A DNA stretch of 57,388 nt, filler included, from Sluysia triapertura (taxonomy: Eukaryota), in the NCBI GenBank assembly GCA_046118255.1. It is 4 parts of 4 records of this genome, joined end to end, with 100 filler letters (N's around TTAATTAATTAA, not from the genome) between each part and the next. Parts side by side here need not be neighbours in the genome. Positions count along the whole stretch, not along the records: positions 25,685 to 42,099 come from JBJNIA010204041.1; 3 more parts are not named here. One strand, 5' to 3'. This document shows positions 37,194-37,628 of this stretch, in pieces. Each line of letters begins with the position of its first letter. Positions within the stretch are counted from its first letter, which is position 1. The position numbers were made by a program, and so were the translations under genes. Under the pieces are notes generated by a model that worked only from the letters and a program-made list of their open reading frames with translations, was not told where the DNA came from and did not search any database.

Positions 37194-37628
37194 CTTCATC
37201 CTTATTTTTCATCTTTGTCAGCCAATTGTGCTATTAGTTGTTTTGTGAGGATGTGCCAGATGGCGGTGGTTTATAATTGATTTTTGATTGATTGTTTTTG
37301 GTCGGTGAGTTTGCTTTTTCTTCTAGTGGGGATTCATGCTCTCTGAAATTATAAAATTATCTAAATTAAAGTATATTTTGAATTATTGAAAATTTGAAGT
37401 TTAATTACCATTCTAACAAAATTTTAGCATATTTTAGTGGCTTTAAGTAATGAAAAAGATGGTTTATCTGAAAATTAGAATGACTCACCTAACAACAGCT
37501 CTTAAATCTTTGTTACCAACATAGATAACAACATAAAAGTTAGGAGCCCAAGACTCAAATTCGTGTTTCCAATTGATGACTGTTGATGGTGGGGCGGCGA
37601 CTAGGAGGATTACCTTTTTTGAATAATC
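37194..37628 (-). pseudogene. Mi-2: Mi-2/CHD3-5 chromatin remodeller ATPase fragments (two spliced exons, internally deleted)
   Basis: Exon 37489-37628 reads [40 protein letters not shown] (cf. [40 protein letters not shown]). After a GTGAGT..TTTCAG intron, exon 37194-37342 reads EHESPLEEKA/HR.KNNQSK/INYKPPPSGTSSQNN** (cf. ENEFSFEDNA...HRLKNNQSK...HKLLLTGTPLQNNLE). Weaker fragments flank it at ~37705-37745 and ~36945-37075. Confidence 0.88.

Follow-up and report, generated by a model that had tools for sequence, protein, structure and literature searches.

The window analysed here, a stretch of 57,388 nucleotides (nt) joined from four parts of the Sluysia triapertura assembly GCA_046118255.1, contains a 16.4-kb piece (positions 25,685 to 42,099, from JBJNIA010204041.1) that is AT-rich, with a G+C content of 20-40%. 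On the minus strand of this piece, around positions 37,194 to 37,628, lies a decayed and amplified partial copy of a CHD3/4/5 (Mi-2) gene, in which helicase motif II is largely deleted and motif III reads PPP instead of LLL. Its layout is given in Table 1. A preliminary description had presented this copy as an intron-retaining Mi-2 pseudogene that had undergone strand-specific T-to-C hypermutation. The pseudogene and its kept intron were confirmed by the match to CHD4, by exon limits shared with L001, L002 and L003 (see below) and by disabling lesions. A strand-specific excess of T>C changes was found in exon B and not in exon A.

Exon A (37628-37488, minus strand) is open, without a stop in 47 codons of AT-rich DNA. 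The encoded peptide corresponds to residues 780-820 of human CHD4 (E=1.4e-12). Matches to other SNF2 subfamilies were weaker (ISWI, 1.8e-5; Snf2/Sth1, 4e-5), CHD1 also lay well behind CHD4, and the best tblastn matches were all Mi-2-type proteins, with 55-65% identity. As orthologue references we used genomic Mi-2 exons from four unrelated eukaryotes (L001-L004). The limits of exon A are identical to those of the Mi-2 exon in L001, L002 and L003 (cag/GGN CAT.. to ..ATC AG/GTG..), which argues that the copy was taken from genomic or unspliced sequence. Judged from its position, the retained intron is orthologous to the intron of the Mi-2 gene itself. Two database "proteins", P0002 and P0121, match exon A in 7-8 stretches; these are translated repetitive DNA and not Mi-2 relatives, and their low E-values are therefore a repetition artefact.

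The translation of exon B on the minus strand is (R)EHESPLEEKANSPTKNNQSKINYKPPPSGTSSQNN, followed by taa tag, and its base composition is A 47%, C 30%, T 13% and G 9%. In an alignment with ten Mi-2 proteins and the DNA of L003 and L004, exon B lacks about 48 codons (NA..VVD; from after EFSFEE to just before EAHRL) and, in a second gap, the nine codons FFR..YK (27 nt), and it carries one surplus codon (T). The second gap starts exactly at the position of an intron in L001 and L003 (..KNNQSK/), which is absent from L004. The missing intron after QSK may reflect a parent that was intronless at this site, one deletion of the intron together with the 27 nt, or passage through a partly spliced RNA. 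The disabling lesions comprise the stops at 37236-37231, the loss of about 48 and of nine codons, the change of LLLTGTPL to PPPSGTSS and, in sister copies, a frameshifting deletion of 37 nt. The alignable indels relative to Mi-2 all keep the frame (+3, about -144, +3, -27, and perhaps -9 and -6; 37237-37342 and 37194-37236). The copy may have been under coding constraint for a time before it died, an impression that is biased by the protein-guided alignment.

Table 1. Features of the Mi-2 fragment and their positions in the window
Feature	Position	Strand	Basis or remark
End of upstream intron with acceptor ttttag	37629..37640	-	arm attacctttt
Exon A, 47 codons, equivalent to the Mi-2 stretch beginning GH	37488..37628	-	translation and homology
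C-rich tract of exon A, gta atc ctc cta gtc gcc gcc cca cca tca aca gtc atc	37575..37613	-	
Retained intron gtgagt...tttcag, phase 2, conserved Mi-2 site after ..AVIR	37343..37487	-	145 nt, GT..AG
Exon B, (R)EHESPLEE-KANSPTKNNQSK-INYKPPPSGTSSQNN	37237..37342	-	Mi-2 sequence with internal gaps
Private T>C burst, tcc cca cta (SPL) against ttt tca ttt (FSF) in the sister	37324..37332	-	
37-nt block, K ANSPT KNNQSK + a, deleted in abundant sister copies	37281..37317	-	
Older T>C burst, helicase motif III, K PPP S GT S S	37246..37272	-	aaa cca ccg cca tct ggc aca tcc tca
Two in-frame stops taa tag, where Mi-2 has L E	37231..37236	-	
Degenerate exon remainder HNWLTKMKNKDE, weak match to ..H(LL)NFL..	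37188..37230	-	donor-like gtaagt at 37193-37188

The parental Mi-2 gene was looked for in three ways. A phmmer search of exon A against 1.84 billion representatives returned only generic Mi-2 fragments with at most 71% identity, and neither a word-indexed search for proteins of 26-82 amino acids nor an exact 30-mer scan of metagenome contigs gave a match. The ancestral codons used below were taken from other species and one sister contig, not from a parent in the same genome.

Read evidence came from the contigs of a single public run that hold the stretch; this run may be the source of the assembly itself. Single-copy contigs have a depth of about 15-37, and the summed depth over about 37114-37735 is 76-308. 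The raised depth delimits a duplicated unit of about 700 nt, and the Mi-2 fragment is thus a member of a family with roughly ten copies or more. An abundant sister contig (depth 413) joins 37282 to 37332 with CTTCAAATGAAA between them. On the minus strand this sister form reads gag cat gaa TTT TCA TTT GAA Gaa tca att..., with the ancestral E-F-S-F-E-E intact, and it is shifted in frame by the absence of the 37-nt block 37317-37281. Over 37237-37282 it equals the window with zero differences, KPPPSGTSSQNN included, and KPPPSGTSS is common to both; over 37332-37400 there are two differences, both transversions. The 37-nt block shares the 15 nt aaa aac aat caa tca with L004 and is therefore ancestral Mi-2 sequence. 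A second contig covering 37419-37548 (depth 13) shows 8 differences and represents an allele or another copy. Read support for the bases of the window is partial: a contig identical to it covers 37419-37619, whereas none individually displays the version that the window has at 37201-37210 and 37283-37331.

Some features of the surroundings were seen in the same contigs. The segments 37003-37058 and 38854-39375 are extremely abundant repeats, whose summed depth reaches 10^5 or more where single-copy sequence has about 30. In one contig, 37713 is joined back to 36982 across 27 nt, which hints at the same repeat following the Mi-2 unit elsewhere, or at a tandem arrangement of the unit. Over 37735-38792, contigs of single-copy depth carry deletions of 21 nt, 9 nt and 2 nt and a few substitutions relative to the window; these variants are probably the other haplotype and would indicate high heterozygosity.

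At residues conserved in Mi-2, exon A carries four G>A changes (G>D, E>K, R>H and D>N), three to four C>T changes (H>Y, T>I, S>L and part of P>I), two T>C changes (F>L at 37607-37605 and L>P at 37589-37587), two A>G changes (I>V at two positions) and a few transversions. The amino-acid divergence of exon A is ordinary decay toward A/T without strand bias. Both T>C replacements listed in the preliminary description are present, but the strand-specific cluster (A>G on the plus strand) that it had proposed does not extend to this exon, where A>G is as frequent as T>C, and G>A and C>T are more frequent.

The C-ending synonymous codons, which had been taken as a further sign of hypermutation, lie in part in the C-rich tract of exon A (37613-37575). 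The third positions of this tract show 7 C and 0 T, compared with 4 C and 16 T elsewhere in the exon (p=0.0004), and third-position C amounts to only 8-16% in the intact open reading frames (ORFs) of the piece. At the second position, T is kept at 8 of 9 sites. Because the C is specific to codon position and second-position T is kept, the pattern of the tract was set under coding constraint and not by a burst in dead DNA. The codons of the tract recur in unrelated Mi-2 genes, namely in L004 (GTG GCC GCT CCA CTT TCA ACA), L003 (TTC CTG GTC; ATC ATC) and L001 (CTA, GCC, TCA, ATC ATC), and much of its C content follows from the residues themselves, A, A, P, S and T having C at the second codon position. 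Over 37549-37712 no base differences are listed despite a depth several-fold above single-copy (176 at 37615, against about 20), so that the tract seems common to the sister copies and hence old. The C-ending codons were probably inherited from the functional gene; judged by the orthologues, the parent probably already had the codons at these synonymous sites, but not the amino-acid changes. GC-biased gene conversion was rejected, since seven third positions of the tract are C and none T, yet six codons end in A without a shift to G. The non-synonymous changes are L>P and F>S, and gene conversion leaves the asymmetry unexplained.

A different event is suggested by the start of exon A. A perfect 10-bp hairpin lies at 37609-37640 (minus strand), in which the intron arm attacctttt is the reverse complement of aaaaggtaat (37618-37609). 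It extends over the acceptor into the first codons of exon A and coincides with a multi-base change, K-GPF to KKVI, which suggests that the KKVI patch is a quasi-palindrome (hairpin) template-switch mutation. Apart from the arm of this hairpin, no 10-mer or longer word of the C-rich tracts recurs within the piece. Local template switching was consequently ruled out for the T>C tracts and is kept for the KKVI patch only.

In exon B the situation is different. The listed replacements are all present, with FSF>SPL at 37332-37324, LLL>PPP at 37269-37261 and L>S at 37248-37246. Comparison with the sister form resolves the first of them into ttt tca ttt > tcc cca cta, i.e. four T>C and one T>A within 9 nt; the orthologue L004 has TTT TCA TTC at this site. 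A further L>P (TTG>CCG) lies inside the 37-nt block. We tallied the first and second codon positions of conserved residues only, and found that 8 of 14 ancestral T had become C compared with 0 of 29 A that had become G (Fisher p=2e-5, a nominal value for a region picked after inspection). If the Leu codons were TTR, the count rises to 12 of 20 T, with a Fisher p down to 1e-6. About ten T-to-C changes on the coding strand are thus gathered in two or three very short patches of exon B, and a strand-specific T>C excess, equal to A>G on the plus strand, is real in this exon.

Besides these, exon B carries only a small number of changes, namely the replacements E>K, H>N, H>Y, T>S and P>S together with both stops. 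Not every change inside the patches is T>C, since T>A (ttt>cta, tta>taa), A>T (act>tct) and C>T (ccc>tcc) also occur there. Patch length is 9-45 nt. The private burst does not reach 37333 on its 5' side, where the t of cat is retained, and can extend no further than about 37290 on its 3' side; the older burst occupies 37269-37246, and the T of atc aat tat just upstream of it are intact. The intron (37487-37343) is ordinary, with C/(C+T)=0.23, the same as the flanks. At least two separate bursts took place: the PPP..S patch is common to the sister contig and therefore predates the split between the copies, and only this copy, or its subfamily, has the SPL patch. The junction of the 48-codon deletion, the 37-nt deletion of the sisters and the private burst cluster in about 15 nt (37317-37332), and the PPP patch lies 9 nt from the junction of the 27-nt deletion. 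Most of the divergence of the copy is ordinary GC-to-AT decay, on which the bursts are superimposed.

Could these patches have come about without any special process, from inherited C-rich codons, the residue make-up of the tracts, chance substitutions in a fast-decaying copy and a choice of sites made after the fact? This explanation fully covers exon A, with its codon periodicity, its orthologue codons and its symmetric non-synonymous tally. It also covers all the synonymous sites cited for exon B, where aac aat caa tca is shared with L004 (AAC AAT CAA TCA, as is GGC) and caa aac aac with L003, and the nominal p-values overstate the case for a region chosen after scanning. Set against it are the three consecutive L>P changes in an invariant motif, the five changes within 9 nt compared with two sister differences in the neighbouring 70 nt or so of intron, and the contrast of 0/29 A with 8/14 T, which is unlikely to arise from independent neutral changes under A/T drift. 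We consider this explanation unlikely. As at least half of the T were converted and no A was touched, the bursts are not scattered damage and point to an enzyme acting on one base of one strand or to a miscopying polymerase. Spontaneous deamination of an exposed plus strand was rejected as well, because it predicts far more G>A on the coding strand than A>G on the plus strand, and exon B has about one such change.

We tentatively prefer the hypothesis that the short bursts stem from repair synthesis at the DNA level, i.e. from error-prone gap filling, which we regard as possible rather than probable. Exon B would contain a recurrently broken or gapped spot. The gap would be filled on the minus-strand template by a translesion polymerase inserting G opposite template T, and the outcome would be short T>C patches, coordinated by strand, in which some T became A and A itself stayed untouched. 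Polymerase iota is accurate opposite template A. According to PMC3031609, its insertions opposite template T are more often G than the correct A. Taken together, these two properties predict the observed pattern of T>C with A untouched. Further points in favour of gap filling are the shortness of the patches, their proximity to indels, the T>A and A>T changes inside them, the templated KKVI patch and the absence of a double-stranded RNA (dsRNA) partner from the places searched (see below). The polymerase is the step that we infer, whereas the identity of the copy, the orthology of its intron, its multi-copy state, the private burst and the strand asymmetry are established by the comparisons above.

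A close known counterpart is the Y-family polymerase iota (PMC3031609), which resembles our case in its T-template-specific misinsertion of G, and with which the short patches, the one-strand T>C and the occasional T>A agree. We group with it the A:T mutagenesis by polymerase eta of the kind seen in somatic hypermutation. Both polymerases are known from biochemistry and somatic cells, whereas the patch described here is fixed in the germline in a pseudogene, with a putative enzyme. To our knowledge, no germline-fixed polymerase iota or eta patch of such a kind has been described in a pseudogene.

Several points weigh against gap filling. Nothing directly ties any polymerase to the exon B site. 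The private SPL burst postdates the large deletion that adjoins it, so that the association with indels is spatial and not temporal. All three or four bursts lie on the same strand, for which the chance is about 1 in 8 if the repair events were independent. The ancestral codons come from other species and a single sister contig instead of the true parent. Moreover, the spread of the family through the genome is left unexplained, which retroposition could account for, and conversion of more than 50% of sites is also a hallmark of ADAR hyper-editing.

The latter had been proposed in the preliminary description, together with reverse transcription. A plus-strand antisense transcript, in which the intron cannot be spliced, would form dsRNA, undergo adenosine-to-inosine editing by ADAR and be copied back into DNA as new family members; the partner strand could be the Mi-2 messenger RNA (mRNA) or a family copy in the opposite orientation. 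The conversion of about half or more of the patch T, with zero A>G on the coding strand, matches promiscuous editing, and clustered A-to-G changes are the recognised signature of hyper-editing (PMC4365171). Bursts at two different times in a multi-copy family are expected from repeated cycles of copying, the limitation of the changes to exon sequence fits pairing with spliced Mi-2 mRNA, and the antisense orientation would account for the kept intron. However, the patches of only 9-45 nt are shorter than typical edited duplexes and spare both the intron and the rest of the equally exonic exon A; T>A and A>T occur within them; and the codon periodicity of the exon A tract is not producible by editing.

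Our searches for the RNA partner and for traces of retroposition lend the editing hypothesis no further support. The 16.4-kb piece contains no inverted copy of the Mi-2 fragment that could serve as dsRNA partner, although a partner in trans remains conceivable, and the fold of the fragment is not unusual on the plus strand (z=-0.44) or the minus strand (z=+0.21). A weak plus-strand tblastn match at 36335-36523 was considered as an inverted Mi-2 copy and proved to be a PX-domain (sorting nexin) fragment. Looking for signs of retroposition, we found no reverse-transcriptase domain in neighbouring ORFs and no clear poly(A) tail beside the copy; both ends of the unit show only AT-rich simple repeats, which are common in the genome. 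ADAR editing would be expected to show a depletion of G on the 5' side of edited A; the 5' neighbours of the 11 inferred plus-strand sites are A at four, T at four, C at two and G at one, a sample that has no power with so few sites in an AT-rich genome. Weighing both sides, we regard ADAR editing followed by copying into DNA as unlikely. Dense A>G changes of one strand with about half of the sites converted are shared with ADAR clusters (PMC4365171) and with the ADAR-type biased hypermutation that is fixed in RNA viruses such as the Drosophila sigma virus (PMC5630973). The present case differs in concerning the chromosomal DNA of an intron-containing fragment, in its much shorter patches, in its transversions and in that no dsRNA partner was found.

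The copying step itself might be the source of the changes if a reverse transcriptase, working on a partly spliced sense Mi-2 pre-mRNA, placed G opposite U, for example when dATP was scarce, and so produced U>C. Reverse transcriptases hypermutate in vitro under biased deoxynucleotide (dNTP) pools. The junction QSK/INYK lies exactly at the intron position conserved in L001 and L003, and the intron is gone together with 27 nt, as would result from splicing to an internal AG. The microhomology GAAG.A on either side of the large deletion is of the kind seen in template jumps, and on the sense strand the copy is followed by an (AAT)n run (37109-37169). Against this, such errors should cover the whole complementary DNA including the retained intron, yet the intron is normal; (AAT)n runs are common in the genome; and the private SPL burst would require a second passage through RNA. 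Asked whether the copy is semi-processed, the sequence gives a mixed answer, in that the QSK intron is gone with an exact 5' limit, 27 exon nt are missing as well, and the intron is absent from some lineages (L004), so that the parent may have lacked it. We rate this reverse-transcriptase explanation as distinctly improbable. The copy resembles unprocessed and semi-processed pseudogenes in being partial, in keeping an orthologous intron, and in its deletions, stops and destroyed catalytic motifs. It departs from them in having about ten or more copies, in the clean absence of the QSK intron beside a kept intron, and in that its alignable indels keep the frame. Diversity-generating retroelements (PMC7826257) offer a likeness in a reverse-transcription step that miscopies template adenines only, in a strand-specific manner; they are, however, prokaryotic or phage systems with a dedicated reverse transcriptase, with template and variable repeats and with changes of A to any base, and no component of them is found here.

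The preliminary description had also offered an undescribed process akin to repeat-induced point mutation (RIP), in which adenines of duplicated DNA are deaminated. A duplicated target with dense, strand-specific and recurrent change would agree with such a process. It is contradicted locally, because within a duplicated unit of about 700 nt only patches of 9-45 nt are hit and the composition of intron and flanks is normal, ttt tca ttt is preserved in the abundant sister copies, and the two neighbouring repeats (37003-37058 and 38854-39375), with thousands of copies, show a handful of differences from the read majority and no A>G clustering. We know of no adenine-deaminating RIP-like enzyme in animals. 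This explanation is, in our judgement, extremely improbable. RIP in fungi and APOBEC editing, the latter described for retroelements by Carmi et al. 2011 as cited in PMC4982230, likewise leave strand-coordinated clusters of transitions in repeated DNA. Theirs are C>T or G>A over the whole duplicated or reverse-transcribed stretch, whereas here A>G or T>C is confined to tiny patches.

The piece contains several other features. A PX-domain (sorting nexin) fragment at 36326-36502 on the plus strand (Pfam PX, E=4.8e-7), with an in-frame stop before it and a stop at its end, may be another gene fragment; it lies about 700 nt away from the Mi-2 fragment, on the other strand. An intact ORF of 864 amino acids occupies 26047-28641 (minus strand); its first 390 residues or so are a divergent tubulin (Pfam Tubulin, 2.4e-49; Tubulin_C, 2.6e-19), followed by a low-complexity tail of about 470 residues rich in N, S and K, and no identical product is on record. 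Sequences related to transfer RNA (tRNA)-Arg(GCG) cluster at 28741-28903, 30170-30476, 30530-30647 and 31468-31501, with one intact gene (30556-30628, plus strand) and several rearranged partial copies that share flanks and lie in both orientations; an Rfam scan of the piece returned tRNA only. An apparently intact multi-exon gene lies at 39855-41010 (minus strand). Its last ORF, of 164 amino acids, has an acidic tract and the Cys-rich C-terminal motif CIGKGCDRLAVWDTRWDGARYCSAECLMDHC, and it gave no Pfam match except a weak one to DUF4786 on an upstream exon. No transposon protein domains were found in the GC-richer region at 32.2-33.6 kb. A Max-like basic helix-loop-helix protein is not encoded in this piece; the Max copy mentioned in the preliminary description concerns sequence outside it.

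Taken as a whole, the bursts are a real but small anomaly in an otherwise ordinary amplified gene fragment. Their present value is that of a pointer, as they amount to about ten informative sites in one decayed fragment, and half of the evidence originally put forward consists of inherited codons. It is doubtful that hyper-edited antisense transcripts of a repeated, intron-bearing gene fragment are written back to the germline and diversify or inactivate the family; a DNA-level adenine deaminase serving as a defence against repeats is a far less likely version of such a heritable A>G footprint. The role of ADAR in shaping genomic copies of retroelements has been described as undetermined (review PMC4982230). 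If edited RNA was indeed written back to DNA, the fragment would be a rare instance, beyond viruses and classical retroelements, of a germline genome shaped by RNA editing. If, on the other hand, the patches are the product of repair synthesis, they would represent a natural, heritable footprint of a T-template-specific error-prone polymerase, an activity otherwise known mainly from biochemistry and somatic cells.

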